Of a stretch of DNA of 64,000 nucleotides, positions 16,413 through 48,070 are shown in pieces (positions within the stretch are counted from its first letter, which is position 1; the number at the start of each line of letters is the position of its first letter). The notes under the pieces are model-generated. The model was not told the origin of the DNA. It saw only the letters and a program-made list of their open reading frames with translations, and did not search any database. The stretch lies in the sequence record MW248466.1; one strand, 5' to 3'. The position numbers and the translations under genes are program-made.

Positions 16413-16973
16413 ATGAGAAAAACAGTAAATCCATTTGATTGGCATATTTTTAAAAAAGGTAAAAATGCAATAATACCTTTTAGATGTCTTATAGCATTGT
16501 TTATATTTTCGATTATAATGCTTTATCTATCAATAATTTATAGTGTCAATTTGTTTTTATTATCTTTAATAATTTTCATTCCTATATTAATAATATCTAC
16601 ATTTATATATGTGAAATATTTTAATGATGAGATTATGGCAGAATACAAATTTATAAATTTTTCTTATGAAATAAAAGGGAATTATTATTCTAAGTGGTTT
16701 TTTAACATGGTAGGAGTTATTGAAAATGAAAAAGAACTTCACGAATTGAATAAAATTATTTTTAATATTAGTAAATTTCACGTAAGAGAATTAGATAGAT
16801 ATAACTGGAAGAATAATACAGGTAAAAATAGATTACTGACTTACAGAGAATTTATCAAATATAGGAAAAATATATTAAAATTAGAAGAAAATATTAAAAT
16901 TGATAAATATATAAAAGAATTTCAAGAATATCATAAATTAAAAATAGATGGAGGAGTATATAATGAAAAATAA
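16413..16973 (+). CDS. Membrane protein (paralog of 16948-17592)
   Basis: FDWHIFKKG...two TM helices...WKNNTGKNRLLTYREF. Confidence 0.75.
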   Translation: MRKTVNPFDWHIFKKGKNAIIPFRCLIALFIFSIIMLYLSIIYSVNLFLLSLIIFIPILIISTFIYVKYFNDEIMAEYKFINFSYEIKGNYYSKWFFNMVGVIENEKELHELNKIIFNISKFHVRELDRYNWKNNTGKNRLLTYREFIKYRKNILKLEENIKIDKYIKEFQEYHKLKIDGGVYNEK

Positions 16974-17592
16974 AATAAATATATTTGATTGGTATATCTA
17001 TAAAAATGGCATGTCAGCAATATTCCCTTCTGTATTTAGCATGTTTTTAACTTCAACACTGGCAATATTATTTACTTCTATATTGTTAATTAATATTAAA
17101 TTAGCATTATTATCTTTATTAGTGTTTATACCAATGATAATTATCTCTATATTTATAAATATAATATTTTTTAATACTAATATTATGACAGAATATGGAG
17201 TAGTAAATAACTCATATAAAGTGAAAGATAAATATTATTCATTTTGGTATATTGAATTAAATGAAGATAATGAGGTTTTTAAAGAAGCTTTTAATAATTT
17301 TAAAAATGAACACGAATGGATTATAAAAGAAGAAAAAGTAAAAAATCTATCAGAAATACTGTTACAAGGATTTTTTATAAAAGACACTAAAATATTGGAA
17401 CTTGTAATAAGAGAAAATAATAGAAAACATTGGAAGAACAATATTGACACAAATAGGTTAATAACTTATAGAGAGTTTCTTAAATATAAAAAGAATAAAA
17501 AGAAATTTGAAAAATCTAAGAAGTTAGAAAAAGAAATAAAAGAATTTCAAGATTACTATAACTTAAACACTAAAGGAGAAATTAAAAAATGA
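16948..17592 (+). CDS. Membrane protein (paralog of 16413-16973)
   Basis: FDWYIYKNG...two TM helices...WKNNIDTNRLITYREF; likely start ATG near 16963. Confidence 0.75.
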   Translation: MEEYIMKNKINIFDWYIYKNGMSAIFPSVFSMFLTSTLAILFTSILLINIKLALLSLLVFIPMIIISIFINIIFFNTNIMTEYGVVNNSYKVKDKYYSFWYIELNEDNEVFKEAFNNFKNEHEWIIKEEKVKNLSEILLQGFFIKDTKILELVIRENNRKHWKNNIDTNRLITYREFLKYKKNKKKFEKSKKLEKEIKEFQDYYNLNTKGEIKK

Positions 17593-18053
17593 ATACTAAA
17601 ATAATCGCAGCATTTCCGGGTACAGGTAAATCTTATATTAAAAATAACATCTCATTCTTAAAAACATCTGATTCAGATTCAACTAGCTTCTCATGGTTAG
17701 TAAAAGATGGAGAAAAGGTTAGAGATCCTAGATTTCCGAAGAATTATATTCGTTATATTAAAGATCTATATTATAAAAATGTAATGGATTATATTTTTGT
17801 ATCAACTCATAAAGAAGTCATCCAAGAGTTAATTGATGCTAATTTAGAATTTGTAGTAGCTTATCCTAAACGTTCAGATAAAGAATTATATTTAAAAAGA
17901 TATAAAGAAAGAGGTTCAGACGATAAATTCATTGAACTTCTTGATAATATGTTTGATAGCTTCATAGATGACATAGAAGATAAAGTTCCTGAAGAAAACA
18001 GAATTGAACTTAATCATAATGAATATCTATCTAATGTATTAGAAAAAATTTAA
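17589..18053 (+). CDS. P-loop nucleotide kinase-like protein
   Basis: N-terminal Walker A IIAAFPGTGKS; size and layout of small phage kinases. Confidence 0.7.
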   Translation: MNTKIIAAFPGTGKSYIKNNISFLKTSDSDSTSFSWLVKDGEKVRDPRFPKNYIRYIKDLYYKNVMDYIFVSTHKEVIQELIDANLEFVVAYPKRSDKELYLKRYKERGSDDKFIELLDNMFDSFIDDIEDKVPEENRIELNHNEYLSNVLEKI

Positions 18054-18070
18054 ATAAGGAGAAATTAAAA

Positions 18071-18529
18071 ATGAGATACTTTAAAGGTGTAGTGGCAGGG
18101 AAAGACTTTTTCTTAAAAGCAAATAATGAAGAAAACGCAATTAAGGAATTAGCATTAAAAGAAATTGAGTCTATAGGATCTTTTACAATGTTAAGTAATG
18201 AAAAACAGAAATATCTAATGATTTTCTTTAATGAAGATGAAGATAAATTTGTTATTGGAAATGGATTAGAATCATATATATCATTAGACAGTCTTAAATC
18301 TGAATTAGAATCTAAAGAGTTAGAATGTTATTATTTAGAATTAGGTAATACAGATAATATTGAGATAGATGGTATTATAAAAAATGAAGAATACACATTA
18401 ACAGAAATAATAATGGAAAGCGTCAAATCAACTATGAATGATTTTTATGAGCAAGTTATAAATTCTGTATTAACTGAGCTGACTGAAAAAGAATATAAAA
18501 ATTCAATAGTTGTTAATAATTTTAAATAA
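18071..18529 (+). CDS. Hypothetical protein with conserved C-terminal tag
   Basis: Ends LTEKEYKNSIVVNNFK. Confidence 0.75.
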   Translation: MRYFKGVVAGKDFFLKANNEENAIKELALKEIESIGSFTMLSNEKQKYLMIFFNEDEDKFVIGNGLESYISLDSLKSELESKELECYYLELGNTDNIEIDGIIKNEEYTLTEIIMESVKSTMNDFYEQVINSVLTELTEKEYKNSIVVNNFK

Positions 18530-18548
18530 CTAGGAAGGAATAGAAATA

Positions 18549-19019
18549 ATGAGAAATAAAAAAAGAAGTATAGATAGTTTGATAAATAATAATCTAGAAT
18601 TACCAATTGAGGTTACTGAAAATTATATAAATAATTTTATATATAAGTCATTAACTACTATAAATGAGAAAAAAGAAATAAAACCAAATCACACTTATAT
18701 AATTAATCATGAAAATGAATTATTTAATAAAGCAGATAATTTCATAAATTGTATTTTAGAATTATTAAAAGGTGATGTAGGTACTTTAATAGATAAAAAA
18801 GATTTAAAGTTAAAAAGAAATATAAAGAAAGATAATATAAATAATTGTCTTACAATATATACTATTGTAGAAACTTTAACTTACAATAATTCTATAACAA
18901 TGATGATGGTAAAAAATGTAAATAATATTAATAAAGAAGTAACTGGTGAACTAATATTTGATATTAACATAAGTGACAAACTAGGTAAAGATAATTATAA
19001 TGAAAATATTTATATTTAA
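18549..19019 (+). CDS. Hypothetical protein
   Basis: ORF track. Confidence 0.65.
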   Translation: MRNKKRSIDSLINNNLELPIEVTENYINNFIYKSLTTINEKKEIKPNHTYIINHENELFNKADNFINCILELLKGDVGTLIDKKDLKLKRNIKKDNINNCLTIYTIVETLTYNNSITMMMVKNVNNINKEVTGELIFDINISDKLGKDNYNENIYI

Positions 19020-19033
19020 TTACTATTTAAATA

Positions 19034-19051
19034 TATATTATATAGATGAAG
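19034..19051 (+). promoter_or_regulatory. Putative early promoter
   Basis: TATATTATA-TAGA-TGAAG. Confidence 0.55.
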
Positions 19052-19074
19052 TTAATTAAAATACAGGAGATGAA

Positions 19075-19422
19075 TTGGATATGTTAAACGATACTAAAAA
19101 GGTTTTAGACAGAATGTATGACAAAATAAATGGTGATTTAATTGTTATTTCAGAGTGTATAGATTTATTTGATAAGGAATTAAATTACACTGTAACTGAA
19201 GGTAATGAGAGAACATCAAATCTTGATTATTTGGCAGATTCTTTAATTGTAGTTGCTTCAGATATATTTACATTAAATGAAGTACTTAATATTGACGAAG
19301 AAACTATTAATAATGAATTATTATCAGAATTTAAATTAAGTTATAGAATGATACAGAATTTTCATATGAAATTGGAATTAAATAGCTATCAATTAAAAGA
19401 GATTAAAACCTCGATTGAATAA
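19075..19422 (+). CDS. Hypothetical protein
   Basis: CAGGAG RBS. Confidence 0.7.
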   Translation: MDMLNDTKKVLDRMYDKINGDLIVISECIDLFDKELNYTVTEGNERTSNLDYLADSLIVVASDIFTLNEVLNIDEETINNELLSEFKLSYRMIQNFHMKLELNSYQLKEIKTSIE

Positions 19423-19441
19423 ATACAGGAGATGATTAGGA

Positions 19442-19927
19442 ATGAATTATTTAAAGAATGGAAAAGAGGAGGTCTTTCCAGTCAATGAAGAAGGAATGGA
19501 AAATATCATATTCTTTCTTCTAGACTACTCACAGAAAAATGATTATAATACAATGAACATAATTAAGGAAATAAATGATCACGTGATGAAAGGCGAAAAT
19601 ATAAGTAATGAATTTATTAATGAAAAGACAAAAGAAACGATATTAACACTAGGTAAAGTAAAAGGCAATTTAACTAATGAATTAGCTAGAAGCGGATATA
19701 TAGTTAATTTCTCTAGAAATAAAATATCATTGTCAATATACGTAAAAAATAACAGTTTCAAATTAGTAAGAATATCAGATCATAATATCAATAAGAAAGT
19801 AAATAAAAAAGGAGTAATAAGTAATAGGTTTGACTATCAAATTAAAGCTGACAGTAAATTGGTAAGTAATAAATCCTTAAAGAAATACGGTATTGATGTA
19901 TCGGAAGGAATTTATTATTTAGATTAA
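19442..19927 (+). CDS. Hypothetical protein with S-x-Y...RISDH motif
   Basis: CAGGAG RBS; SLSIYVKNNSFKLVRISDH. Confidence 0.7.
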   Translation: MNYLKNGKEEVFPVNEEGMENIIFFLLDYSQKNDYNTMNIIKEINDHVMKGENISNEFINEKTKETILTLGKVKGNLTNELARSGYIVNFSRNKISLSIYVKNNSFKLVRISDHNINKKVNKKGVISNRFDYQIKADSKLVSNKSLKKYGIDVSEGIYYLD

Positions 19928-19954
19928 TAAATGTATTGAATTAAAAATCAATTA

Positions 19955-19972
19955 TATATTATAATAATGAAG
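19955..19972 (+). promoter_or_regulatory. Putative early promoter
   Basis: TATATTATAATAATGAAG followed by a tgaagataa/ttatcttca stem-loop. Confidence 0.6.
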
Positions 19973-20022
19973 ATAAATATTATTAATATTATCTTCAATA
20001 AAAAAAAAGGGAGTTTTATATT

Positions 20023-20316
20023 ATGGCAAAATTAAATGAAGAAATATTAAGAGATTTTCAAGTAAGAACTGAGATTGATGGAGAATTTGAAGTAATGGAA
20101 TCTGATGAGCTCGGTGTTGATGAAGCTTATGAGAATGAATTAATTAAAGAGTTGGGGGTAGATGTAGATTCAAGCGTATTTTCTTATGCAATAGCAGAAG
20201 TAAATGATGAAGAAAATATGTATACCTTAGAGTATAGTCATGAAGGTGTTCTACTAACTATTCATGATTATGATGAAGATTATGTACCACAAACTATTTA
20301 TAAAAACATAATCTAA
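20023..20316 (+). CDS. Small acidic hypothetical protein
   Basis: GGGAG RBS. Confidence 0.75.
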   Translation: MAKLNEEILRDFQVRTEIDGEFEVMESDELGVDEAYENELIKELGVDVDSSVFSYAIAEVNDEENMYTLEYSHEGVLLTIHDYDEDYVPQTIYKNII

Positions 20317-20326
20317 TAATTTAAAT

Positions 20327-20359
20327 TATAGCTGATATCTTTAATGGATATCAGCTATA
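20327..20359 (+). terminator. Terminator hairpin
   Basis: tatagctgatatct/ggatatcagctata. Confidence 0.65.
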
Positions 20360-21012
20360 TTATTTTAATTTTTTTACTTGAAGGAGATGAAAAGGATAAT
20401 ATGAATTATTTTGAATTGGAATATACAGGTTTAATTGATAATAATCAATTAGATAATGGAGTTCTACACAAACAAGAAGATGAAGAAATTGAATCCGGTC
20501 TTTTAAATATGATTTTATTTAAATTGTATCTAAAAGAATTCTATAATGATAATATAGATGATAATGATTTATGTAAGAAACTAAAAATAGAAATAAGAAG
20601 TCTTCATAGTTATAATAATTCAGAAATCTATATTAATGAAGACTTTGCTGAAATATATGATGGCATTAATCCGAATAATAGCATTAAATCAAGAAAAATA
20701 AATAAAGATTATGAATATTTATTTGAATTTATTAAGGATAATATAAATGAAAAAGATTTAAATAATATACATGCAATTAAATTTACAACATTTAAAGTAG
20801 AGAGATATAAACCTGTTGTACGTTCTATATACTCAGATAAACTTAAAATTAAAACTAGTAAATTCATTAGTGGACCTACAGCAACAAGAGAATTTGTATT
20901 TTATAATATTTCAAGTGAAAGTTTATATAGATTAATGAATAATACGAATAGAATAAGAAATATAACGGAAAAAGAATATAAAAATAAATTAGTTAAAAGG
21001 AGTTTCTTATAA
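20344..21012 (+). CDS. Hypothetical protein with conserved C-terminal tag
   Basis: Ends ITEKEYKNKLVKRSFL; likely start ATG 20401. Confidence 0.75.
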   Translation: MDISYIILIFLLEGDEKDNMNYFELEYTGLIDNNQLDNGVLHKQEDEEIESGLLNMILFKLYLKEFYNDNIDDNDLCKKLKIEIRSLHSYNNSEIYINEDFAEIYDGINPNNSIKSRKINKDYEYLFEFIKDNINEKDLNNIHAIKFTTFKVERYKPVVRSIYSDKLKIKTSKFISGPTATREFVFYNISSESLYRLMNNTNRIRNITEKEYKNKLVKRSFL

Positions 21013-21551
21013 TGTATGAAGTTAATAAAAAATTTAAATATGATAAAAGGGATAAAGAATTCACATTATTCCACCAGAAATCAGAAGAAGAAATAACTGA
21101 TTCATTTATAATTATTAATTATATTTCATATGTATTATATCAATTCTACGAAAGAACACCAGGAAATGCAGATGTCTGGTTAGAAATTACTGATATAAAA
21201 GGTAATTTCTTATTTAAATTTATATTTGATAACAGACCATCTTTCGGTTCTAATTATTTTCCTAAGTGTAGTTTAGGTATACAAGATAATAGTGATAATG
21301 AAATTGTGACTACCGAATTTAGTGATAAATATAAAAGACATAATTTTATTCTAAAGGAAATATCTAAATTTAATAATGTTCTTATTAATTTTTATGAAGA
21401 AGAATTATTTACTAATGACGATGAGGAATTAAACTTATCAAAGATTGTATTTAAAACTAATGACATTAAATTTTATCAAAATAAAGATTTAATTAGTTAT
21501 ATTTCAGATAAAGAAGCTAGAAAAATTTTAGTAAAAGAAAACTTTAAATAG
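21012..21551 (+). CDS. Hypothetical protein with conserved C-terminal tag
   Basis: Ends ISDKEARKILVKENFK. Confidence 0.75.
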   Translation: MYEVNKKFKYDKRDKEFTLFHQKSEEEITDSFIIINYISYVLYQFYERTPGNADVWLEITDIKGNFLFKFIFDNRPSFGSNYFPKCSLGIQDNSDNEIVTTEFSDKYKRHNFILKEISKFNNVLINFYEEELFTNDDEELNLSKIVFKTNDIKFYQNKDLISYISDKEARKILVKENFK

Positions 21552-21567
21552 AATAGGGGTAAATAAA

Positions 21568-22104
21568 TTGAATAGATACTTTAAATTTAAATTAAATAAT
21601 AAAAGTGATTACGATGTATTTAAATTTTCAGGAAATGAAGAAGAAATAAGCGATTCTAAAATTATAGAGTCTTATTTTGCTTATATGCTTGATTATTATA
21701 TAAATGAAGCAATACCTGACTCTAGTATGATTAATATTGCTGTATTTACTATAGATGAAAGAAAAAGGTTATTGAGCTTTACTATAGATAAACCGCCAAT
21801 TTATATAAAAGAGCCAGTTAGTACTTTATTTATGAATGAAAATGATGAAGATAAACAAATTAATTTTAAAGAATTTAATGAAATTAAAAAATTTATACAC
21901 GAAAAGATTATGGAATTGAATGAGGATGAATTTTACATTTACATTGATTATAATTTTGATTTTTCTTATGAAAAAATAGATTATGATAATGCATTTGATA
22001 AGTTATTATTTATTAAAAATAATTTAAATTATAATCAATTCCATATTAAAGAAACAGATGAAAATGAATATAAAAATTATCTAGTGAGGGAGAATTTTAA
22101 ATAA
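21568..22104 (+). CDS. Hypothetical protein with conserved C-terminal tag
   Basis: Ends TDENEYKNYLVRENFK. Confidence 0.75.
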   Translation: MNRYFKFKLNNKSDYDVFKFSGNEEEISDSKIIESYFAYMLDYYINEAIPDSSMINIAVFTIDERKRLLSFTIDKPPIYIKEPVSTLFMNENDEDKQINFKEFNEIKKFIHEKIMELNEDEFYIYIDYNFDFSYEKIDYDNAFDKLLFIKNNLNYNQFHIKETDENEYKNYLVRENFK

Positions 22105-22125
22105 AAGAGAAAGTGAGATAAATAA

Positions 22126-22902
22126 ATGGAATACGTTATGATAAATAAATTACTAACAAAAAATGATTCATCTGAATTAAAACTAAATATGGTCAAACCG
22201 TATAAAGAGGAAGAAGACTTTTTCAATTTCTTTTTAAACTTTATTATAGAATATAATTCATATCATATAGGAAATTATAAATACTTTTATAGTATAAACT
22301 CATTATCAGATTATAATTCAGATTATCAAATAAATGGAAATCCTTATGTACCATTTGAGGAAGGAATAAAGGTAAATGAAGTTATTCATATTTATAAAAA
22401 TAAATTATTTAGAAATATAAGTAAAGACATTGAAAATAGAATAATTGTACTTTATGTAGAAGATAAAGAAGATGATATTTCCTTTTATATATTAACATCT
22501 AATTACTTTAATAGAAAATTTAAAAAAGAATATAAAGAAGAACTTTTCGATAAAGAAGAAATATTATCTAGACTTATAGTAAAATCTTTTCTAAATGAAA
22601 AGATTTTATTAGATTCACATTCAGAATTTTTAATTATTAAAGATAAAGAAAAATTAAGCAATTTAATTACTAATTTAATGAAAAATCAAAAATACAAAAT
22701 TTTAAACTTTGATTTCTTAAGTAATAGTGAATTAAAATATAGTAGAATACTATTTAATAAAAATGTATATGATAATAAATTAGTCCTAAAACATTTAAAA
22801 GGAATAAGTTACAAAGATATTATTGATAAAGATAAAGAGAAAATTACATTTATAGATAAAGAAGATTACAAACATTTAGTAATTAAGGAATCATTTAAAT
22901 AA
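22126..22902 (+). CDS. Hypothetical protein with conserved C-terminal tag
   Basis: Ends IDKEDYKHLVIKESFK. Confidence 0.75.
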   Translation: MEYVMINKLLTKNDSSELKLNMVKPYKEEEDFFNFFLNFIIEYNSYHIGNYKYFYSINSLSDYNSDYQINGNPYVPFEEGIKVNEVIHIYKNKLFRNISKDIENRIIVLYVEDKEDDISFYILTSNYFNRKFKKEYKEELFDKEEILSRLIVKSFLNEKILLDSHSEFLIIKDKEKLSNLITNLMKNQKYKILNFDFLSNSELKYSRILFNKNVYDNKLVLKHLKGISYKDIIDKDKEKITFIDKEDYKHLVIKESFK

Positions 22903-22980
22903 ATAATAAATATTCTCATCCATTCACTATATAATAACTTTTAATTATATAATAATTTTTAGAATGGATGAGATGCTTTT

Positions 22981-23640
22981 ATGAGTAATTATTTATATCG
23001 TTTTAACAAAAAGAATGTAAATATCTTCTATCATAAAAGGACTAATAATGGTCATAAAATGTTATTTAATAATAGCAATGATAAAGATAGATCTATATAT
23101 TTAATAAATACTGATGAAGAAATCAATAATATGGAACTAGTATCTAAATATATTGCTGGAAAAGTATTTGAAACGCTAAACCAAGAAAATATGAAAATAG
23201 TGCATATGGATTTCTTTAATAGTAAATTAGAATTCTTTATAAGTAGATCATCCAAGAATAAATATATAATGAATATGTATTTTAGTTTAAAAAGTTATAA
23301 TGACCTAATAGAAAATGAAAAAGAATTTATAGATAGTGTTAATGAACTTAATTTAGATTTTTTAAAATCAGTTTCTTTAGATCAAGACAATAATCATATA
23401 TTGGATATGACATTAATATTTTTAATAGATAAAAATAAAATAGATGAATTTATTAAAAATCTATTTTATATTAATTATATAAAGATAATAGAATTTATAA
23501 TAGATACTATATCTGTATATGCAGACGATTATAAGAAATTTAATGAAGAAATAAATATTCTTTTGGATCATAGAAATTTTGTAGAAGAAATAACATATAA
23601 AGAATATAAAAAGATAATGACGAAAGAGATGTTTATTTAA
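22981..23640 (+). CDS. Hypothetical protein with conserved C-terminal tag
   Basis: Ends ITYKEYKKIMTKEMFI. Confidence 0.75.
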   Translation: MSNYLYRFNKKNVNIFYHKRTNNGHKMLFNNSNDKDRSIYLINTDEEINNMELVSKYIAGKVFETLNQENMKIVHMDFFNSKLEFFISRSSKNKYIMNMYFSLKSYNDLIENEKEFIDSVNELNLDFLKSVSLDQDNNHILDMTLIFLIDKNKIDEFIKNLFYINYIKIIEFIIDTISVYADDYKKFNEEINILLDHRNFVEEITYKEYKKIMTKEMFI

Positions 23641-23647
23641 GGAGTAA

Positions 23648-24364
23648 TTGACTATGAAGATTTCAGCCAATAAAGAATTATTAGGAAAGAAAGTTATACC
23701 TTTAGGTTTTAAACAACTTAATAACTTATATAAAGATCATGATTATGTATATTTAAGAATTCCTGAAATATTTAATGTATTTGATAAGTATCAATTTAAG
23801 GATAATAAATTTGTATATCTTAAAACAGAAATAAAACCCAGTACTATTGTAGATTTAATAGATTCTTTATCAGGTGGATACAATGGTTTATTGAATAAAT
23901 ATATTTCTAATGATATACTAAATATACATTATACAAAGAAAAATTTATTAGATATTTCTAATAGTGAATATAAAACTCTAGAAGAAACAAGGCTTCAGCT
24001 AGATTTAGAATTAGAATTCATAAGTAGTAATGAAAAACAAAGAAAGCAATCTAATATTTTAATAAAGGATATTCATAAAGAAATAAATTATATAAGGAAC
24101 GAATATACAAAAGTATTCACTCTTAAGAAAAGTAAAACTAGAAATAATAAACCAATAAAAATAAAAATTAGAAATTTATATGATGAAGATCCAATATCTA
24201 TATTAAAAATAATATTGGACTTGGGAGAAGATTATTGTATAAATAGTACTATATTTAACGCATTTACTTACTCATTAATGTTAACACATAATTTGGATTT
24301 TATAGACGAAAAAGAATTTCAAGATATAGTTAAGAAAGAGAAAATAAAAAATACTTTCATTTAA
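23648..24364 (+). CDS. Hypothetical protein with variant C-terminal tag
   Basis: Ends IDEKEFQDIVKKEKIKNTFI. Confidence 0.7.
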   Translation: MTMKISANKELLGKKVIPLGFKQLNNLYKDHDYVYLRIPEIFNVFDKYQFKDNKFVYLKTEIKPSTIVDLIDSLSGGYNGLLNKYISNDILNIHYTKKNLLDISNSEYKTLEETRLQLDLELEFISSNEKQRKQSNILIKDIHKEINYIRNEYTKVFTLKKSKTRNNKPIKIKIRNLYDEDPISILKIILDLGEDYCINSTIFNAFTYSLMLTHNLDFIDEKEFQDIVKKEKIKNTFI

Positions 24365-24370
24365 AACATT

Positions 24371-24411
24371 ATTCATATAGTTTGAGGAAATTTTCCTTAA
24401 GCTATATGAAT
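24371..24411 (+). terminator. Terminator closing the early region
   Basis: attcatatagtttgagga/tccttaagctatatgaat followed by a T-rich run. Confidence 0.7.
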
Positions 24412-24561
24412 TATTTTATTTTTTTTTCTAAAAATATAAACTAATTTATATTAATAATTTTTACAATGTATCATGCACTTAGTCGCAAATATTTATTTAT
24501 TTTAAGAACATAAATTTTATATCAAATAATATAGAATTTTTAAAAAGGAGAATTTAATTTT

Positions 24562-25089
24562 ATGGAAAAACATGATAAATTAACTGAAGAGTTAGAAGCT
24601 TTATACGAACAATCTCAAGAAGAATCTTTAGAAGAGCAATTCGAAAGCATTATTGAATCTGCTGATGAAGAAGAAACTGAAGATAAAGATTCTAAAGAAG
24701 ATTCAGACGAAGAAGAAACATCTGTTGAAGAACAATTTAACAGTATCTTAGAATCAGAAGATGAAGAATCTGACGAAGATGAGGAAGAAGATTCAGATGA
24801 AGATTCAGATGAGGACTCAGTTGAAGAATCTGATGATGAAGATGAGGAAGAAGATGACGAAGATTCTTTAGAAGAAGAATTAAATCGTTTATTTGAAGAA
24901 AATGAAGATCCAGAAATGGATGTTGAAAAGCAAACTACAAAAGCTAACAACATGAACTCAAAAAAATCATCTGATTCTACTGAACATCCTGAAGAAGATG
25001 TAAGTAAAATCACTTCAGAAGATGAAGATGAAGACGAAGATGACGAAGATGAATCATTAGAAGAATCATTAGATCGTATCTTTGGTTAA
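24562..25089 (+). CDS. Highly acidic repeat protein, putative prohead scaffold/internal head protein
   Basis: D/E-rich with repeated S(L/V)EE-x-(F/L)-x-x-(I/L) helices and I/L-x-E sites. Confidence 0.5.
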   Translation: MEKHDKLTEELEALYEQSQEESLEEQFESIIESADEEETEDKDSKEDSDEEETSVEEQFNSILESEDEESDEDEEEDSDEDSDEDSVEESDDEDEEEDDEDSLEEELNRLFEENEDPEMDVEKQTTKANNMNSKKSSDSTEHPEEDVSKITSEDEDEDEDDEDESLEESLDRIFG

Positions 25090-31102: not shown

Positions 31103-31583
31103 TTATAATAGATTCCATTCTCATTTCAAGAATTGTAAATACCGCAAAGAAGAGATTTAGGAAAGAGATGAAAATTTTTAATATTATGGTAGATTGCATA
31201 CCGGCACTATCTAAAGATAAAATAGCGTATATTAAAAATAGAGCGAAGTTAATAAATGCACCTATAGTCATTAAAGGTTTCGTCATGAAATTATCTAAGA
31301 ATAGGGAAGCAGCTAAAGCCAATCCTCCAATAATTAAAAATACACCATATGTTTTTAAATCCATAAAATTAGAAATAGCCACATAAATATCTGATGTTCT
31401 ATAAGCTTCTCTTGTTCGAAAAACAAATTGAAAGCCGTAAACTAAAGAATAAACAGATAAGAAAATAGGAGTTATATAATATTTAAATTGCTTAAGAAAA
31501 TAATATAATTTGATGACTAAACTATTTGCTTCTTCAACACTTAGATTATCTTCTCTATCATTATTTTTATTATCGCCTGTCAT
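31089..31583 (-). CDS. Four-TM membrane protein in the lysis cluster
   Basis: Four hydrophobic segments. Confidence 0.7.
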   Translation of the reverse strand: MTGDNKNNDREDNLSVEEANSLVIKLYYFLKQFKYYITPIFLSVYSLVYGFQFVFRTREAYRTSDIYVAISNFMDLKTYGVFLIIGGLALAASLFLDNFMTKPLMTIGAFINFALFLIYAILSLDSAGMQSTIILKIFISFLNLFFAVFTILEMRMESIINGRR

Positions 31584-31683
31584 AGTTATTTTTCACATCC
31601 TATTTTTTTATTATAAATCTTTATTATAAATCTTTGTTCCTTTAATAGACTTGATGTGTTCTATAAACTTTGAAGCAAAATAA

Positions 31684-31717
31684 AGTCCCTAACACTCAAT
31701 TAAGAATGTTAGGGACT
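31684..31717 (-). terminator. Terminator hairpin
   Basis: agtccctaaca/tgttagggact. Confidence 0.65.
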
Positions 31718-31855
31718 GTTTGAAGACTTTGCCAAAATTAAAAGAAAAAAGAATAAAGATAGACAAGAACAAAGAAATTGTATGAAAGATATTTATGTAA
31801 ATAACTTTCATATAAATATGTTCTATTTTCTTTATTCAATTGATGTTGATAAGAA

Positions 31856-32194
31856 TTACTGATTAGGTAAAGTTCCACCTTGAGCTGTTGAAGGATTTTC
31901 AGGATCTTCTTCTTGAGGTTCTACTTCTGTAGCTCGACCAATACCTTGAACTTCAGAATCTTCTACTGAATCATCAACAATATGTTCTTCATCAATAGGA
32001 TCTATTTCTTCAACTAATTCTTCGTCTTCAACATCATCACTAGATAATGTTTCTACATCATTTAATTCATTCAAAACTTCTCCAACAAATAATCTCAAAT
32101 TATTACCTTCAGAGACTTCATTTAATTCTAAAACACCTTTAGCTACTAATGTAGCATGAAAAGTTACGATAAAAGATTTTTTATTTAAACTCAT
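31856..32194 (-). CDS. Small tail-associated protein (CD1375/XkdX-like N-terminus, acidic tail)
   Basis: FHATLVAKGVLELNEVS...LRLFVGEVL resembles small proteins found after tail fibre genes. Confidence 0.45.
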   Translation of the reverse strand: MSLNKKSFIVTFHATLVAKGVLELNEVSEGNNLRLFVGEVLNELNDVETLSSDDVEDEELVEEIDPIDEEHIVDDSVEDSEVQGIGRATEVEPQEEDPENPSTAQGGTLPNQ

Positions 32195-32208
32195 AGTTTA
32201 ATTTCCTC

Positions 32209-32571
32209 CTATTTTCTTCCAGCCAATAAAGCAGCTAATTTCTCTTGAAGTTCACGAATTTCTTTTTCTTCAGGAGTTTCTTCTGGTTCTTCTTTCTTAT
32301 TAAAAGTTTGACCTGGTTTTTCAACCAATCTAGGTTTTGAATCGATTGTTTCAACTTTTAATTTTTCCATTTGTTCACGAATATTATGATCTACAATAAA
32401 AATTATAGTTTCTTGAGTAGAGTCATTCATATTATTTATCGAATAACCTGAAAAATAACCTTCTTCATCAATATCTTGCATATTAATAATGAGCCAGAAT
32501 AAATTCTCAATTCTTCTACCTTTTTCATCATACATACTTTCATAAGTTTCAACAATTGCCAAAATAAACAC
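32209..32571 (-). CDS. Hypothetical tail-associated protein
   Basis: Follows the giant tail gene. Confidence 0.65.
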   Translation of the reverse strand: MFILAIVETYESMYDEKGRRIENLFWLIINMQDIDEEGYFSGYSINNMNDSTQETIIFIVDHNIREQMEKLKVETIDSKPRLVEKPGQTFNKKEEPEETPEEKEIRELQEKLAALLAGRK

Positions 32572-32627
32572 TTCCTTTTATAATAAATATTTATAAATAT
32601 AAGTTTATAAATATTATAAATAACTGA

Positions 32628-35600
32628 TTACGTTATCATCTTAATAGCTCTACCTTCATCTGCAAAGTCACTTAATGACATACGAACTATAGAGATTTGA
32701 GCCATTTGTGAAGCACCTGTTGATCCAGTTATAGATAATTGTATTAGTAATGTTTTATTATAATTGTCTGGAGGACCTAAATCAATTGTCGCAACTTTTA
32801 TACTTGTATCCGGTTTAGATGAACCGGATATTCCTATTTCTCTATGCATTTTTATGTTACTATTAGTTTTCCATCCTAAACCGTCACTGAATGTAACGTA
32901 AAGGTTATTTCCTTCTTTTGAAACTGCTTTATAAACAAATTTCAGATATCTTCTATTATGATGATAACTAAAAACATTCAATGTTGCTTTGTCTTTTCCA
33001 GAAGCTTCATCTAATTGTGCATTATCATAACCATATTTATAGACATCTCTAAAAATATTATATGTTCCAGCTCTAGTATCTTCTAAAATTATCGGCCTAA
33101 AGTTTCTTTCATCATTAGCATGAGCAGATCCGCTAACCCAGTTCCAAGTTTTAACTCCAGGCATAGTTGCAACAAAGTTGGTTTCAGATAAGAATAATCC
33201 ATCTACCATCTGGTCAACACCATCTTTTCTAATGGTTAGTCCAGATGAATTTATCTCAACATAATTATCTGTATCCATTGCTGTTTTTGAGATTTTTAAT
33301 TTGTCACCAGAAAATACTACATTCCCTTTGCTATTATATATGGTCATTCTATCAGTGTTGAAATCTATATTATTAGATATCATTTTTATAGATTCTGGGT
33401 TCATTGAAATTTTACTAGACATGGCACCAGTACTGTATTTATCTAAAGATGAAGGTGTCCATGTTTTTAATGTATTTCCCTTTTCTAATTTAGGTAAACC
33501 ATAGTAGAATCTAGTTTCATCAAAGAAGGTTTTATTATGATCATAATTATTATATCTTAATAGAAATCTTACATAGTTAGTTTCTCCGTTATCAGTTGTT
33601 CTTGGTATTTTTGTAGTAAAACTATATCTCTTCCATGTATCAAATACAAATTCACTAGCTGGAATTTCAACTCTACTAATACTAGCATTTGTACTCTGAC
33701 TTGTATTTTCATAACCCGCCATCTCAAAATATATTTTATAAGATAAATATTTTTTTGCAGATGATGGTATATAAATATATACAGATCCTGTAATATAGTC
33801 TCCAATTTCAAAGTTTCCTTCCCTGCCTACAGGTAGATATCCTGATAGAATTGAAGGCCACGTAGAACCAAAATCATTTTGAGTATATTTAAAAACAGAC
33901 TTAACGGAACTATCATCAAATTCCATATCTTCATTTCCATCTACATATTCAACCAATTTAATATTTTCAAATGAAGCATCTATACTTGAATTTTCATCAG
34001 TACCTGATCTAGTTGCATATAATAATAACTGATTAACACCTTCTTCATTTGGCGAAGTGAATTCAATATAATTTCTTTCTCCATCAGTTACTGGAAACTC
34101 TTGTGTGTGTGTTGAAGGCATAACAGGTAAGAATGATCCATCATCAAAAGATGAACCTGTATATGGATATCTATATGGAAATAACGTAACTACTTTTAGT
34201 GTATTTTGTCCTGATAATATATTATAGTCAAATGCTAATTTATATTTTGTATTTTTCTTTAATGGTGAGGACAGACTTATTGTCATTCTTCTGTAATTTC
34301 CACTTGTAGATATATTATTCTTTCTATATCTAGGAGCTAAAGCAATATTATCATCTGTACTTATTGTCATATCACTTTCGTCAGCTATAGAAAATCTAGG
34401 GTATAAAGGTCTATCCGATTTATCTAGACGAATATTTTTGAAAGAAAATTCACCATTTGAGTAGGGTGACACAGATGCTATAATGAGTCTCAATCTATCC
34501 ATTTTAGAAAGATCTGCACTTGTTACTGTGAATGTCGTTTTAAAGAAATTCCATTCTTCAGTTAGATCGCTATCTGCACTGAGAGTATAACTTAATGGAT
34601 TAAGTGTTTCACCTGGTTTGTTTACTCTTAAACTTACAGTTATTGATCCAGTTGGTGTAGTTCTGGATTTTCTGGCTTGGAAACTGAAAGTGTAAGTTCC
34701 TGGATTAATCTTTGAAAGTTTAGGACTTCCTGCTCCATCAGAATAATCTTTGCTAGATGTTTGCCATTGTTTCCATCCTTCATTCGCATTTGATCTTATT
34801 GTCAAATAATCTTTATTTGCGGTAGTTGTATCCGTAGGATATTCTTCACTTGATCCACTAAATGTATATATCCAGTACGGTGAGTCAATTTTTTCTGCAT
34901 AATTTATTTTTAATGATTCATTGTCATCAGCATTGACCCATCCTTCCCATCCATTACGAAGATCAGTATTTATTAATGAATTATCTGCGTTTAAATAAGT
35001 ACTTATTTTATTAACAGATAATTCAATAGAATCTGCTTTTTGATCTATTTTAGAAGAGACAGTAGATATTGAAGTCTCAATATCTTCGGGAGCTGGAGAC
35101 CAATCAGTTGCTTTATTACCTTTTTCTATTTTAATATTAGAAATATAAATATTTGCTTTTGAAGTGGATTCTCTAGTAATATAAAATCTCATATAATTAC
35201 TTTCTTGAGATTTGAATGGAACGCTATATCTAACAATATTATTGGTTAAACTTTTATTAAATTCATTATACCCAAAAATGGATACAAATGGATCAAAATC
35301 AGTAGCATCATCCTTAAGCTTTCTTATTTGTGGATAAATATCTCCTTTTTCACTACCATCTTTATATGCATCAAATGATATAATATAATCCGTATAAGGA
35401 TCAGTTTTAAAAGTTTGAGTCAACCAGTTTTGATTTCCACTATTTTGAAGTGGTGCAAAAGTTCTCCCATCTTTATTAAATTTATCTGTAAAATTACCAA
35501 TCCAGAAAGATTTATCAAAATCTTTAGTACCTCTTAGTATATTTTTTCCACCGACTTGAATATTGTTAATTTGAGAATTAACATCTTCAGGAGCAGGTGT

Positions 35601-38600
35601 CCAATCAGTAGATTTATTACCTTTTTCAATTTTAATATTTTTAATAGAGAATTTATCTCCATTATTATTGTTATATGCGTATATAGCCCATCTAGAGTTA
35701 GTTCCAGAAGTCTTAGTTATTTTAGAAGTGTATTTATATCTGAATTCTTTATTACCAATATTAGTTATTGTATCACTACCAATAGACATTCCTGGATCTA
35801 CTACACTATCATATATTCTAAATACATCCCCACGTTCCATTTGTAAATCAAATGATATAGATATTTCATCTCCAACTTCTACTTTGTTTAATAATTCATC
35901 AATATAAATTCTCCATAAATATTGATAACTACCATTTGAATTATCTTCAAAACCTTTATTCCAAGATAAACTGTTTTCTAATAAGTTTCTAGCACCAATT
36001 TGAATATTATTAATATTTTCATTAACTCTATTTTCAACAGCAGAAACTTGACTAGTAATTTGATTTGGTAATTGTTCGATACTTGAAGTATTTGCTGATA
36101 TTTTACCATCTAGTATTTTTTGTTCACTTACAATACCACTAATTTTATCTGTTTCAACTTTAAGTTCAGAATAATTATTTTCAATTAATTTACCAGTTTC
36201 AGTTAATTTAGTAGCATTAAGAGTAATATCTTTTTCAGTCTGAGTTATTCTAGTTTCAGCTTTAGAAAATCTATCTTCAAGATCCCCTTTAGATAATCCC
36301 CAATCTGTATCAATATTACCTAATTCTAGTTGAGGCTTAGAAATATAAGCTAAACTATTTACATCTTTAGCTGTAAAGTAAATTCTTATCTTTTTACTTT
36401 TACCAGTATTAAATCTAACATTGTAACGTTTATCTTCTTCTGTAGTTTCTCGATAAGTACCACTAGTTATAATATAATCTAAGGGATCGAAAATTTTACC
36501 ATCATCAGTTAATCTCATAATAGGTGTATATGCAATTCCTTGAGTAATTCCTTCTTTATTATGTGCATTATAGCTTAATACATAATCAGTATTAGGTATT
36601 ACATCTACTTCTTGGAATATACTCCATGCTAATCTGTTAGATTCAGAAATATAATCTAGTGAGTAACCAATACCATCTTTAATTATCCCACCATATTTAC
36701 TGAAGTTTGTCTTATTAAATGGTAAATCAAATTTCTCAGTACCCACTAATAAGTTATTTCCACCTATTTTAATTTTATCAGAAAGAGCTTCTACACTAGT
36801 TTCAGAAGTAACTCTTTGATCAATTCTACCAATTTCAGCAGTAATACTAGTCTCTAAATTAGATACAGTGTCATCCGTAGCTTCTTGTTTAGATACTAAA
36901 TTAGTAATTCTATCAGCTTCGACTTTAACTAAAGCTTTAGAAGATTCCATAACGTCATTAACTGCAGACTGTCTATCTGTAACTTCTTGAGTTATAGCAT
37001 CATTAGCAACTGTTAATTTACCTGAAAGATCTGTAATATCAGTACCTTGTTTTTCAACTTTTTCGGCAGTGATTGTATAGCTACTATCAAGTTGTTCCAC
37101 TTTAGTAGATAAATCACTATAATTATCTTCAGTTGCTGTTATTCTTTGTACCAACGATGTAATTTTATCAGTTTCAATCTTTATTTGACCAATTTGACTT
37201 TCTAATTCTTCTCTATCTGTTTTCTGTGACTGAGAAACTAGATCAATCTGTCCTGCGATAGTTTCTATTCTAGAAGTAATGTCTGTCATTACTTTATCAT
37301 CTAAATCAGTTATCTTCTTAGAAACTTCTTGACGGATCATATCGACAGTCTGACTTACTTCGGAGAAACCTTCAGTGACTTGTTTTCTATAGTCATCCAT
37401 CTCTTTTTTAGTCATCATAGTAGCAACTAATTCATTAGTATCTATAACTGTCTTTTTAACTGATTCAAGACCAGTAACATCATACATCTCTAAATTAGTA
37501 ACCCAGAATTTAGGTTCATCAGATCCATCTTCAAATTCAATAACATCTGAATCTTCAGATTGGTTTACTTTAAAGTATAATGTCATATAGAAAGCACCGT
37601 ATAGGAAACCATTAGTACCTCTAACATTTTCTTTAGTAATTAAACCTTGACGATGATACCAACCATTAAATTCTTCTGGATCGTCATCTTCTTCTGTATT
37701 AGGAATATCCTCATCTTTAATTAAAGACCATTCTACATTACTATCAGTAAATGTTCCTGAGACTTTAGTTCCGGCAGGGAAACCACCATCTTCTGAATCA
37801 TAGTTAATTAAATCAAAAGGTCTATTTAAATAGATACAATTATTTTCTCTATCAATAGCTCCAAAATCCCAACCGTTCATGAATACATTTCTAGAGTATG
37901 CTGATTCTCCATAATTATAACCATCATTACTCTTGAAATTCCAAATAACTAATGAATGATTGTCATTATAATCTGTTAAATTAGGATTAATATTTCTATT
38001 AAAAATTCCAGCATTAGACACATTATAATTATTAGTCATAGTTTTAATAGCTTCTTCTTCATCTACTGGAGTTGAATTAGTATCAACAGCAACATCTGAA
38101 TCCGGCATAGGAACATCAATTTCATCTGATGTTGTTGCATCTTCTTCAGGAGTATCATCTGCATAGATTACAGTATCTTCTTCTTCATCAGGCAATGCAT
38201 TAGGATCATCTATAGAAAGAATATCATCTGCATCATTAGGTAATATAATTGATCCGTCTCTATCGTAATCATAAACAGGAGTGTCATCTCCTTCATCTAA
38301 TGGAGCAGATTGGAATCTATAAGTATCATCAAGACCATCAAGACTATTGAAATAAATAACTTTATCTCCTTGTCTTAATTCTTGAGCTAATTCAATTACA
38401 GGTTTTTCACTACCCATTACATGTTGAGATTCTATTAATTGTCCATCTTTATCATAACTTAAATGTCCTATAGAAGAAGGAAGCGAATTATTATTTTTCA
38501 TAAACATAGAAAGTTTGTATGTTTTCTCTGGATTAATCGGTATTAATCTTTCAGAAGAAACAGTAGAGTTAAATCCGTCCATTCTAAATGAAGCTGCCGA

Positions 38601-40748
38601 CTGAAACGCATCTGAATTATCGTAATACATTCCAGAGAAGTTTGATTCATCTCCTTGATCTGCATTACCGTTAAAAATTAAATTATCTCCACGAGAATCC
38701 ATATAGTAATTAAATTCTTGTTGAGATACTTCTAATTCTTGACCTAAATCTTCTCTAACGTTATTAGCTTCAGCCATAGCTTTATCTATATCTTTAGATT
38801 TCTGATCTAGCTCTTCTTGTTGTTTTTCTAGTTCTTTTTTAGTTAAAGCTAGATTTTCTTTAGATTTAGAGATTTCTTGTTTTGTATCTTCGATTTGTTT
38901 TTTAATTTGTTCTATTACATCTTCGTTACTTATATTACCATCTATGTAACCGTCAGGGTTAATAGGTAATCCAAGAACATTAGATAAATTTTCTACAAGA
39001 TCATGCAGTTGACCTTTTAGATTCATACTTGATTCTGTATTATTAGATTCAATTCTTTCAACCTTATTTTTCATTAAATCTAATGAAGATTTAAGGTTAT
39101 TTATATCTGACATAACATTTATGTCACCTTTTAATATTTGAGAATCGCTATCGTAAGTTAAACCTAATATTCTAGCAATTTCTTTAAATACAGTATCTTT
39201 AATACCGTGAGAATATTCATTTTGAAGTTTATTCATTTCTAAGTTAATAGCTTCATTAGATAATTCAATAATACTTTTAGTGCTATTAATTACAGAATAG
39301 AAACCTACAAACGATTTATTAATATCTTTCATTAATGATTCATTCTGATCAGCTCTATTAAGCTTATTAACTTCAGATTTTATTTTATCAAAGTCATTAT
39401 TAATTTCTTTAATTTTATCTCTAACCTGAATTTTAATTGCATCTTCTTTAAGATAAGCTGAATCAAATATAGATTTTAATTGGTTAACAACTTGATCTTT
39501 TTGAGATTTAATCAAATTAAAATCAGAAATAATGGCATCAAAATTAAGTTCTTTATTTGATTGTAATACACTTGATCCATCTGTACTACTATTGTTACTA
39601 TTACTAATATCATTAATATAATTTTTAAATGATTCTAATTGTTTATTAACTAGAGATTCAACTAATTTAACATCATTACTTTTAGAAGCTGTATTATCTT
39701 TAATAAAGATGTTATCATTAGCATATTTAGTATAATTATCTAACATTTCAGGTTTATAAAGTTCATTAGAATCTTTATGCTTAGCAAAGAAGTTAAATTT
39801 CTCTATATTATAATCGAATAAACTTCTCTCTAATTTATATATTTGAAAACCTGCTGTTAACTCAGGTTTAATATTTTTATAATTGATGAATATTTGACTT
39901 GATATAAATTTATTATAATGACAGTTAGTCCAATTTCTTAATACTAAACCAGTCATTTTTAAATCTATAGCATTCAAAGAACTGTCATTAAGGTATTTAG
40001 AAGCGATTTCTTCCATTTCATCTCTAGTTTTTCCTTTAACTTCCATAGTGTCAAATATATAATTTTCATCTTTAATAAATCTAGCTTGATTTAATGAATC
40101 TTTAACAGTAATAGATTCATTATTATCATTATACATGATTAAGCCAGTTTTAATATTTGATTTATCTACATTAAATTCAAAACCAGGAATTCTACCAGAA
40201 ACTTCTTTAGGATTAGATTTTCTTAAATCTTTACCTTTATTAATTATTAAAGTTCTTTCATTTGTATTAATATCATACTTATGTCTAATAGATAAATCTT
40301 TTTCAAATAAAATATCCAATAATTTTTCAAATACAGATTTATTATTTTTAGATAAAGTTATTTCTTCATCAACAACTAAATCATTATACTCAATATTATA
40401 TCCTGTATTCAATAATAAAGTACTTAATATTGATTTTAATTGTCCATTTAATTCTTCATTAGAATTCATAAAAACATTATTTAAATCTTTTACATAAGCA
40501 GGAATCAATGAAGATTTTAAACCATCTTCTTCAATACAAACAAATTCAGAATCATTCTTACTTTCATCTTTAATAATTATATGTGTATTTTCTGAAATGT
40601 AGTTTTTACTTTTGAATTCAATATTAATGATTTCAGTTTTCTTACTAAAATCATATACTAATTTCTCACCAGAGATTACATTTTCAAAAGTTTCTGCAAC
40701 TAATTTACCTTCAATTCTTTTACGTTCTTTATCTAGAATACTAATCAA
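32628..40748 (-). CDS. Giant tail/host-specificity protein (2706 aa)
   Basis: N-terminus resembles Tal/endopeptidase-type tail proteins; long coiled coils; at least four NLL...KxEKGN..TDW.PAPED-type modules; C-terminus similar to the 998-aa protein. Confidence 0.75.
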   Translation of the reverse strand: MISILDKERKRIEGKLVAETFENVISGEKLVYDFSKKTEIINIEFKSKNYISENTHIIIKDESKNDSEFVCIEEDGLKSSLIPAYVKDLNNVFMNSNEELNGQLKSILSTLLLNTGYNIEYNDLVVDEEITLSKNNKSVFEKLLDILFEKDLSIRHKYDINTNERTLIINKGKDLRKSNPKEVSGRIPGFEFNVDKSNIKTGLIMYNDNNESITVKDSLNQARFIKDENYIFDTMEVKGKTRDEMEEIASKYLNDSSLNAIDLKMTGLVLRNWTNCHYNKFISSQIFINYKNIKPELTAGFQIYKLERSLFDYNIEKFNFFAKHKDSNELYKPEMLDNYTKYANDNIFIKDNTASKSNDVKLVESLVNKQLESFKNYINDISNSNNSSTDGSSVLQSNKELNFDAIISDFNLIKSQKDQVVNQLKSIFDSAYLKEDAIKIQVRDKIKEINNDFDKIKSEVNKLNRADQNESLMKDINKSFVGFYSVINSTKSIIELSNEAINLEMNKLQNEYSHGIKDTVFKEIARILGLTYDSDSQILKGDINVMSDINNLKSSLDLMKNKVERIESNNTESSMNLKGQLHDLVENLSNVLGLPINPDGYIDGNISNEDVIEQIKKQIEDTKQEISKSKENLALTKKELEKQQEELDQKSKDIDKAMAEANNVREDLGQELEVSQQEFNYYMDSRGDNLIFNGNADQGDESNFSGMYYDNSDAFQSAASFRMDGFNSTVSSERLIPINPEKTYKLSMFMKNNNSLPSSIGHLSYDKDGQLIESQHVMGSEKPVIELAQELRQGDKVIYFNSLDGLDDTYRFQSAPLDEGDDTPVYDYDRDGSIILPNDADDILSIDDPNALPDEEEDTVIYADDTPEEDATTSDEIDVPMPDSDVAVDTNSTPVDEEEAIKTMTNNYNVSNAGIFNRNINPNLTDYNDNHSLVIWNFKSNDGYNYGESAYSRNVFMNGWDFGAIDRENNCIYLNRPFDLINYDSEDGGFPAGTKVSGTFTDSNVEWSLIKDEDIPNTEEDDDPEEFNGWYHRQGLITKENVRGTNGFLYGAFYMTLYFKVNQSEDSDVIEFEDGSDEPKFWVTNLEMYDVTGLESVKKTVIDTNELVATMMTKKEMDDYRKQVTEGFSEVSQTVDMIRQEVSKKITDLDDKVMTDITSRIETIAGQIDLVSQSQKTDREELESQIGQIKIETDKITSLVQRITATEDNYSDLSTKVEQLDSSYTITAEKVEKQGTDITDLSGKLTVANDAITQEVTDRQSAVNDVMESSKALVKVEADRITNLVSKQEATDDTVSNLETSITAEIGRIDQRVTSETSVEALSDKIKIGGNNLLVGTEKFDLPFNKTNFSKYGGIIKDGIGYSLDYISESNRLAWSIFQEVDVIPNTDYVLSYNAHNKEGITQGIAYTPIMRLTDDGKIFDPLDYIITSGTYRETTEEDKRYNVRFNTGKSKKIRIYFTAKDVNSLAYISKPQLELGNIDTDWGLSKGDLEDRFSKAETRITQTEKDITLNATKLTETGKLIENNYSELKVETDKISGIVSEQKILDGKISANTSSIEQLPNQITSQVSAVENRVNENINNIQIGARNLLENSLSWNKGFEDNSNGSYQYLWRIYIDELLNKVEVGDEISISFDLQMERGDVFRIYDSVVDPGMSIGSDTITNIGNKEFRYKYTSKITKTSGTNSRWAIYAYNNNNGDKFSIKNIKIEKGNKSTDWTPAPEDVNSQINNIQVGGKNILRGTKDFDKSFWIGNFTDKFNKDGRTFAPLQNSGNQNWLTQTFKTDPYTDYIISFDAYKDGSEKGDIYPQIRKLKDDATDFDPFVSIFGYNEFNKSLTNNIVRYSVPFKSQESNYMRFYITRESTSKANIYISNIKIEKGNKATDWSPAPEDIETSISTVSSKIDQKADSIELSVNKISTYLNADNSLINTDLRNGWEGWVNADDNESLKINYAEKIDSPYWIYTFSGSSEEYPTDTTTANKDYLTIRSNANEGWKQWQTSSKDYSDGAGSPKLSKINPGTYTFSFQARKSRTTPTGSITVSLRVNKPGETLNPLSYTLSADSDLTEEWNFFKTTFTVTSADLSKMDRLRLIIASVSPYSNGEFSFKNIRLDKSDRPLYPRFSIADESDMTISTDDNIALAPRYRKNNISTSGNYRRMTISLSSPLKKNTKYKLAFDYNILSGQNTLKVVTLFPYRYPYTGSSFDDGSFLPVMPSTHTQEFPVTDGERNYIEFTSPNEEGVNQLLLYATRSGTDENSSIDASFENIKLVEYVDGNEDMEFDDSSVKSVFKYTQNDFGSTWPSILSGYLPVGREGNFEIGDYITGSVYIYIPSSAKKYLSYKIYFEMAGYENTSQSTNASISRVEIPASEFVFDTWKRYSFTTKIPRTTDNGETNYVRFLLRYNNYDHNKTFFDETRFYYGLPKLEKGNTLKTWTPSSLDKYSTGAMSSKISMNPESIKMISNNIDFNTDRMTIYNSKGNVVFSGDKLKISKTAMDTDNYVEINSSGLTIRKDGVDQMVDGLFLSETNFVATMPGVKTWNWVSGSAHANDERNFRPIILEDTRAGTYNIFRDVYKYGYDNAQLDEASGKDKATLNVFSYHHNRRYLKFVYKAVSKEGNNLYVTFSDGLGWKTNSNIKMHREIGISGSSKPDTSIKVATIDLGPPDNYNKTLLIQLSITGSTGASQMAQISIVRMSLSDFADEGRAIKMIT

Positions 40749-40778
40749 ATTTAATTCACCATCCTTTCATTTAATTGA

Positions 40779-40790
40779 TATTAATGTGTT
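40779..40790 (-). promoter_or_regulatory. Putative late promoter AACA-N6-TA
   Basis: Matches the AR9-type late consensus just upstream of the giant tail gene; low-information motif. Confidence 0.45.
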
Positions 40791-40802
40791 CCATGTCAAT
40801 AA

Positions 40803-41225: not shown

Positions 41226-41342
41226 TTTAGAAAAACTCCTTTTAAATTAATATTTATAATATAAATTAAGTTATTATGGCATTTTAAAAAATTACTCAAC
41301 ATTTTATTTATTATGAAACTAATAGAAAGTGGGTAGAAATAT

Positions 41343-42605: not shown

Positions 42606-42624
42606 AAAAAAAATCAAAATATTA

Positions 42625-42656
42625 GAGGTAACTATCAAATTAATGATAGTTACCTC
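42625..42656. terminator. Bidirectional terminator
   Basis: gaggtaactatca/tgatagttacctc between convergent genes. Confidence 0.7.
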
Positions 42657-42663
42657 AATTTTA

Positions 42664-43470: not shown

Positions 43471-43551
43471 TTATAAAAATTATTTAAGATTATTTAATTA
43501 CCATTAATCTCATTTATATAATATATATTTAAATAATGTTTATAATTTTAT

Positions 43552-47221: not shown

Positions 47222-47226
47222 AAAGC

Positions 47227-48063: not shown

Positions 48064-48070
48064 TAAAATA

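Follow-up and report, generated by a model that had tools for sequence, protein, structure and literature searches.

The tail-bearing genes of the window

The stretch of DNA analyzed here, hereafter the window, is 64,000 nucleotides long and comprises bases 1-64000 of the Staphylococcus jumbo phage MarsHill (MW248466.1), an AR9-like phage with a 266.6-kb genome and reported uracil DNA. The window is very AT-rich (GC 0.19-0.30). Its region 18000-24500, which is 100% identical to MarsHill at the same coordinates and is matched at 77-97% by nine other Staphylococcus jumbo phages, carries seven genes whose proteins end in a common C-terminal tail: CPT_MarsHill_031 and CPT_MarsHill_036 to 041 (gp031 and gp036-041; Table 1), all labelled hypothetical. 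Of these, gp040 is the most conserved across the clade (74-99% identity).

The seven C-termini had been quoted in an initial annotation made from the sequence alone, and each was recovered exactly in the list of open reading frames (ORFs), as the extreme C-terminus of one of these genes. The penultimate phenylalanine that it described is present in all seven tails, the seventh of which carries a four-residue insertion. Five of the gene starts it used are unchanged, and for the other two, 20344 and 23648, the annotated starts 20401 and 23654 are preferable. In the case of gp036, we moved the start from 20344 to 20401 because the ATG at 20344 sits inside an annotated terminator hairpin (20327-20366) and the orthologues begin at a later ATG.

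Table 1. Tail-bearing genes of the window and the terminators that flank the gp036-041 unit (window coordinates).
Feature	Position	Strand	Protein length (amino acids)	Tail	Remarks
gp031	18071-18529	+	152	18479-18526	solitary tail-bearing gene
terminator hairpin (annotated)	20327-20366	+			precedes the gp036-041 unit; a TATATTAT match (20356-20363) overlaps the hairpin and lies 45 nucleotides before gp036
gp036	20401-21012	+	203	20962-21009	tail-bearing
gp037	21012-21551	+	179	21501-21548	tail-bearing; recent paralogue of gp038
gp038	21568-22104	+	178	22054-22101	tail-bearing; best structure model
gp039	22126-22902	+	258	22852-22899	tail-bearing
gp040	22981-23640	+	219	23590-23637	tail-bearing
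gp041	23654-24364	+	236	24302-24361	tail-bearing; four-residue insertion
terminator (annotated)	24364-24429	+			closes the gp036-041 unit

A family defined by its C-terminal end

We built a hidden Markov model (HMM) profile from 25 tails and scanned it against every stop-to-stop ORF of the whole MarsHill genome. Among the full-length ORFs (112,373 residues), 25 terminal matches scored at least 15 bits, and the one nominally internal match at this threshold is itself a tail, with an alignment that ends two residues before the stop. Since three shuffled ORF sets and a reversed set gave no match of at least 15 bits, a chance origin of the tail matches is excluded. Every new match, genome-wide, ends at a stop codon. 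Iteration over the final 22 residues of each of the 635 genomic ORFs with 60 or more amino acids converged on 29 tail-bearing genes, with a gap in E-value from 4.5e-5 to 0.029: gp031, gp036-041, gp097, gp105, gp106, gp110, gp117-119, gp121-127, gp131-134, gp254 and gp262-264. All are annotated genes on the plus strand and they fall into six clusters; together they encode 5,804 amino acids, which corresponds to ~6.5% of the genome and ~11% of its ~270 genes. The shared tail measures 16-22 residues, and in all 29 members it stands at the same distance from the stop codon. The set of seven in the initial annotation is therefore real, although the scan it had proposed, with its 29 strictly C-terminal matches, shows that the set understated the family about fourfold.

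Two further paralogues, gp260 and gp261 (MarsHill 261797-262687), have shortened, divergent tails. The first is 35% identical to the tail-bearing gp264 and its tail is decayed; the second, with a shortened tail, has a start that resembles those of gp262 and gp263. The family therefore exceeds 29 members, and its tail can decay. Partial tail-like ends that fall below the profile threshold are also seen in gp094 (91744-92022), gp103 (101272-102459) and gp136 (127908-128231), and their counterparts in phage SA1 (5180-5359, 15374-16615 and 34544-34741) keep such ends; one of these proteins has 398 amino acids. Judged by these sequences, gp094, gp103 and gp136 may be more distant family members.

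Orthologues from phages Machias, SA1 and LY01 retain the tail, and the copy number of the family varies between phages. Searching 1.84 billion representative proteins with a HMMER profile of the seven window proteins returned nine matches, all from this clade, tail-only matches being beyond the reach of this search. With gp040 as the query, tblastn against 50,697 phage genomes gave matches only in ten Staphylococcus jumbo phages. Scans of IMG/VR with two tail patterns revealed no family-like gene ends, and a word-indexed protein search found no relatives outside the clade, a result of little weight as few candidates were returned. The literature and databases that we searched contain no description of the family.

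Next to the stop codon, 28 tails were compared column by column, with information measured against the phage's own amino-acid composition (position -1 is the last residue). Phenylalanine occupies -2 in 27 of the 28 (4.1 bits) and lysine -10 in 25; valine or isoleucine stands at -6 in 24, lysine at -1 and aspartate or threonine at -15 in 23 each, glutamate at -12 and lysine at -13 in 21 each, and glutamate at -14 in 20. The conserved columns are written with a variety of codons (four for valine at -6, two for leucine at -7, several for threonine at -15 and -16), the substitutions are conservative (isoleucine, tyrosine, valine or phenylalanine at -11; lysine or arginine at -5), and the DNA 3' of the stop codons is unrelated between genes. 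Therefore, selection acts on the tail peptide and not on the DNA.

The tails also differ in charge from the remainder of the proteins, referred to here as the bodies: the mean net charge is +1.6 for tails and -7.9 for bodies, and 25 of the 29 bodies are acidic. The tail exceeds the middle of the protein in conservation (0.43-0.59 versus 0.29-0.36) in four of the six orthologue groups. It is the most conserved segment in groups A-D, level in group D with the stretch just before it, and the first 20 residues likewise lie above the middle in conservation. Tail subtypes track the genomic clusters, with tyrosine at -11 in 0 of 14 tails from gp117-134 versus 9 of 14 elsewhere (p 6e-4).

Bodies, predicted structures and surroundings

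Among the seven window proteins, BLASTP aligned gp037 and gp038 over their full length (27.6% identity over 163 amino acids, E 2e-4), and otherwise only the tails matched. When the tails were removed from all 29 members, BLASTP linked just gp037 with gp038, gp117 with gp119, and gp133 with gp134, and similarity over the whole length, which the initial annotation had named as the mark of an ordinary paralogue family, is confined to these three pairs. Its description of the N-terminal parts as dissimilar holds by BLASTP, HMM and profile-profile comparison, except for gp037 and gp038. Pfam gave no match to the seven proteins at E up to 1 or to all 29 at E up to 0.01, including PRANC, F-box, ankyrin or any other repeat family, and PHROGs and PDB sequence searches returned nothing significant for either set. 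What the members do have in common are same-strand tandem arrays, similar size, recent duplicates and a copy number that changes between relatives. In addition, a pair of aromatic residues within the first 15 positions occurs in 16 of the 29 members versus 17 of 205 other proteins (p 1e-8, for a pattern chosen post hoc).

Structure prediction, also proposed in the initial annotation, was informative for gp038 and much less so for gp031. The input alignments were shallow (18 rows, with paralogues mixed). The AlphaFold model of gp038 is a compact alpha/beta domain (predicted local distance difference test, pLDDT, 80.4; predicted template modelling score 0.76) that starts with a beta hairpin (residues 2-7 and 16-21) and a long helix (29-48), followed by further strands and helices. 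Here the tail is an integral part of the model: it forms a strand (160-163) and a helix (165-177) with pLDDT 84-92, the strand leads straight into the helix, and no low-confidence linker precedes the tail. The model of gp031 is poor (pLDDT 50); its first and last ~20 residues reach 73-77, and the order of elements at these ends is the same as at the ends of gp038. Foldseek found no match for the gp038 model in the PDB at E up to 1e-3. In BFVD it found the protein's own subfamily and a weak full-length match to a 258-residue model (E 0.034, template modelling (TM) score 0.41), which, judged by its length and accession series, is probably the gp039 orthologue. We also considered the DUF600/EsaG-like immunity arrays of Staphylococcus, to which there was no profile or fold match: Pfam gave no hit, and the Foldseek hits to 2ia1 and 8gup had TM ~0.2 and E >0.3.

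Regarding expression, TATATTAT is the early-promoter core reported for MarsHill. It is barely enriched in the window (51 matches versus 38 expected), and it lies within 100 nucleotides upstream of 4 of the 29 family genes versus 1 expected (p 0.02), a result that is suggestive only; the four genes are gp036, gp117, gp131 and gp264, at distances of 45-74 nucleotides. The RNA-seq study of SA1 (PMC9414953) classified 97 early genes; its text and supplement list no family gene by name and give no per-gene classes. The very shallow published virion proteome of phage DC4, a close relative (15 proteins), does not contain the products of DC4 genes 00206 and 00212-00217, the orthologues of the window genes.

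All genes of the left arm, as far as the tail-fibre gene, are orphans. Just upstream of gp031, gp028 and gp029 (window 16413-17592) form a pair of small proteins with 38% identity (E 1e-19) and hydrophobic N-terminal segments. Directly before gp031, gp030 (17589-18053) has a glycine-rich, P-loop-like start that is kept in Machias and LY01; Pfam, searched at E up to 0.01, gave it no match. Immediately following the gp036-041 unit, gp042 (24562-25089) is extremely acidic, of low complexity and rich in aspartate, glutamate and serine, a composition that probably also accounts for the long antisense ORF at 24615-25013. The genes scanned on the plus strand between 15000 and 25100 (gp026-042) had no Pfam match, and a Pfam search of ten neighbouring genes likewise gave nothing.

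Explanations for the conserved tail

Our best explanation, to which we give an even chance of being correct, is that the 29 genes represent a clade-specific, tandemly duplicated family with hyper-diverged bodies, whose conserved C-terminal element serves both in the fold and as a shared interaction surface. The family would have grown by tandem duplication of whole genes. The bodies, mostly acidic and 130-280 amino acids long, would later have diverged past sequence recognition, a divergence of the kind typical for phage genes in a host arms race, while the last 16-22 residues would have stayed almost fixed. In the predicted tail, a short beta strand passes through a helix-capping residue into a terminal helix, which ends with asparagine or glycine at -3, phenylalanine at -2, one more residue and the stop. 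By established capping rules, aspartate, threonine or serine at -15 together with glutamate at -12 would make an N-terminal capping box, and asparagine or glycine at -3 followed by phenylalanine a C-terminal cap. The tail most likely has two roles: to close the fold, possibly against the N-terminal hairpin, and to present, at the free C-terminus, a common positively charged surface that one shared partner or other family members would recognize, with each variable body adding a different specificity. From the gp038 model, the tail probably belongs to the fold. The strict retention of its exposed charged columns and of its exact distance from the C-terminus makes it probable that the tail is a shared interaction surface as well; these exposed positions show tighter conservation than a helix with a structural role alone should require.

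The tandem arrays, the duplicate pairs, the paralogues with decayed tails, the cluster-linked subtypes, the N-terminal aromatic pair and the copy number that varies between phages favour common descent. Several observations weigh against this explanation as a whole. The basis for descent of the entire family from one ancestor is indirect, body homology being limited to three pairs. When we pooled the bodies of 57 family proteins from MarsHill, SA1, Machias and LY01, they separated into 27 clusters that HMM searches did not connect; all 351 profile-profile comparisons by hhalign stayed at or below 17% probability, and an earlier profile comparison of six orthologue groups likewise showed no link. 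A profile of the N-terminal region derived from a single cluster gave the remaining members no higher scores than background (p 0.64). The structural similarity across subfamilies is weak and comes from the single match at TM 0.41, Foldseek of the poor gp031 model was uninformative, and the gp038 and gp031 models are not independent, as they share a shallow, paralogue-mixed alignment. A strongly amphipathic tail helix was rejected, its hydrophobic moment being at background. Moreover, no result indicates a partner for the tail, be it a host protease or chaperone, the phage RNA polymerase or a packaging or capsid component, all of which the initial annotation or we had considered.

An ordinary paralogue family, albeit one of great size and divergence, whose tail is simply the best-preserved secondary-structure element and is read by no partner, is possible, though we doubt it. 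It would accommodate the integration of the tail into a compact domain with no linker, the tandem arrays with recent duplicates, the subtypes that track genomic clusters, the common N-terminal aromatic feature and a middle less conserved than both ends, and large lineage-specific expansions are known in jumbo phages (PMC7824862). However, it would be odd for one of about a dozen elements to remain near-invariant when the other core positions have fallen below detection, for this element to include residues of solvent type (glutamate at -14 and -12, lysine at -13, -10 and -1), and for the distance to the stop codon to be fixed in every member, which is not required of a purely structural helix. 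We think it improbable that, in line with the modular system proposed in the initial annotation, recombination supplied unrelated bodies with one common C-terminal peptide for docking, sorting or packaging. The 27 unlinked clusters of body sequences agree with such modularity, as do the strictly C-terminal position of the tail and the fact that related Bacillus and Listeria jumbo phages have arrays with their own, different conserved ends. Yet no body matches a known domain, so independent origins lack footing; the DNA coding for the tails bears no sign of recent transfer between clusters, and the tail subtypes follow location; the duplicate pairs and the paralogues with decayed tails indicate vertical divergence; and family proteins are not in the shallow DC4 virion proteome. 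Together with the tandem arrays and the N-terminal aromatic feature, the duplicate pairs, the decayed tails and the subtypes favour one family over unrelated modules. What stands of the proposal of a variable body with a common docking peptide is an element that is conserved, strictly C-terminal and selected at the protein level; that the tail is a free docking tag carried by unrelated modules is the less likely reading. AlphaFold places it as the strand and terminal helix of a compact domain with no flexible linker.

The conserved stretch could also be a translated nucleic-acid signal, such as a promoter, a terminator, or a ribosome-binding or coupling signal, and the tight packing of the genes would fit this, as would the one case of gp036, whose tail-coding DNA contains the ribosome-binding site annotated for the gene that follows. 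We find this scarcely credible and rejected it on the codon variety: conserved columns use several synonymous codons, amino-acid substitutions are conservative, downstream sequences and spacings differ, and tails are found both within transcription units and where these end. Tentatively, and with rather low expectation, we also consider that the tail is a C-terminal address label recognized by a single hub of the phage or the host, such as an unfoldase, the GroEL-like chaperonin of the phage itself, the virion RNA polymerase or the interior of the capsid. About 30 diversified, mostly acidic proteins would then be delivered to, or act through, one machine as a plug-in sorting or adaptor system, an idea that we hold equally loosely, and some bodies may be the missing factors that protect uracil DNA or counter host defences.

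Short terminal signals of known systems were compared with the tail. SsrA-like tags read by ClpXP end in non-polar residues and are unstructured. The MarsHill tail shares their extreme C-terminal position but departs from them in both of these features: 23 of 28 tails have lysine as the last residue, and a helix is predicted (pLDDT 84-92). Encapsulin cargo-loading peptides target unrelated cargo from the C-terminus, and the capsid-targeting sequence of the T4 internal proteins is N-terminal and cleaved. Both resemble the tail in being short terminal peptides on dissimilar proteins, whereas the tail is predicted to be structured and, unlike a cargo-loading or capsid-targeting peptide, has no flexible linker before it, the predicted strand running directly into the tail helix. 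The ankyrin/PRANC adaptors of poxviruses, to which the initial annotation had likened the proteins, also form a many-membered viral family in which the N-terminal part varies and the C-terminal element is conserved. In contrast to the 16-22 residues of the tail, PRANC is a domain of ~60 residues, and with neither PRANC nor ankyrin matched, the analogy is one of logic alone. We know of no Skp1/cullin ubiquitin ligase in the bacterial host.

Two AR9-like relatives, Bacillus phage vB_BpuM-BpSp and Listeria phage LPJP1, carry arrays of proteins of ~110-350 amino acids with a conserved C-terminal end, at 36760-49516 in vB_BpuM-BpSp (labelled 'tryptophan repeat gene family') and at 31237-36991 on the minus strand in LPJP1. 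Their ends differ from the MarsHill tail and the proteins are repeat proteins; homology to the MarsHill family was rejected at hhalign probabilities of 0.03 for whole proteins and 0.2 for tails. A parallel in organization is the lineage-specific expansion of ~35 zinc-ribbon genes in Bacillus phage G (PMC7824862), which shares with the MarsHill family the dozens of small paralogues of obscure role, the tandem arrays and the restriction to one lineage. Unlike the zinc ribbons, the MarsHill proteins have no known domain and are recognizable just by their last 16-22 residues.

About one MarsHill gene in nine thus belongs to a family undescribed in the databases and papers searched, in a group of uracil-DNA Staphylococcus phages under consideration for therapy. 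The evolutionary signature is unusual in that everything has diverged except a short, strictly terminal element. If the tail is only structural, the family would still be a striking example of sequences that decay while their framework is conserved, and the tail profile would serve as a practical annotation marker for this clade. If, on the other hand, a common partner reads the tail, one peptide and one profile would suffice to find and pull together about 30 proteins.

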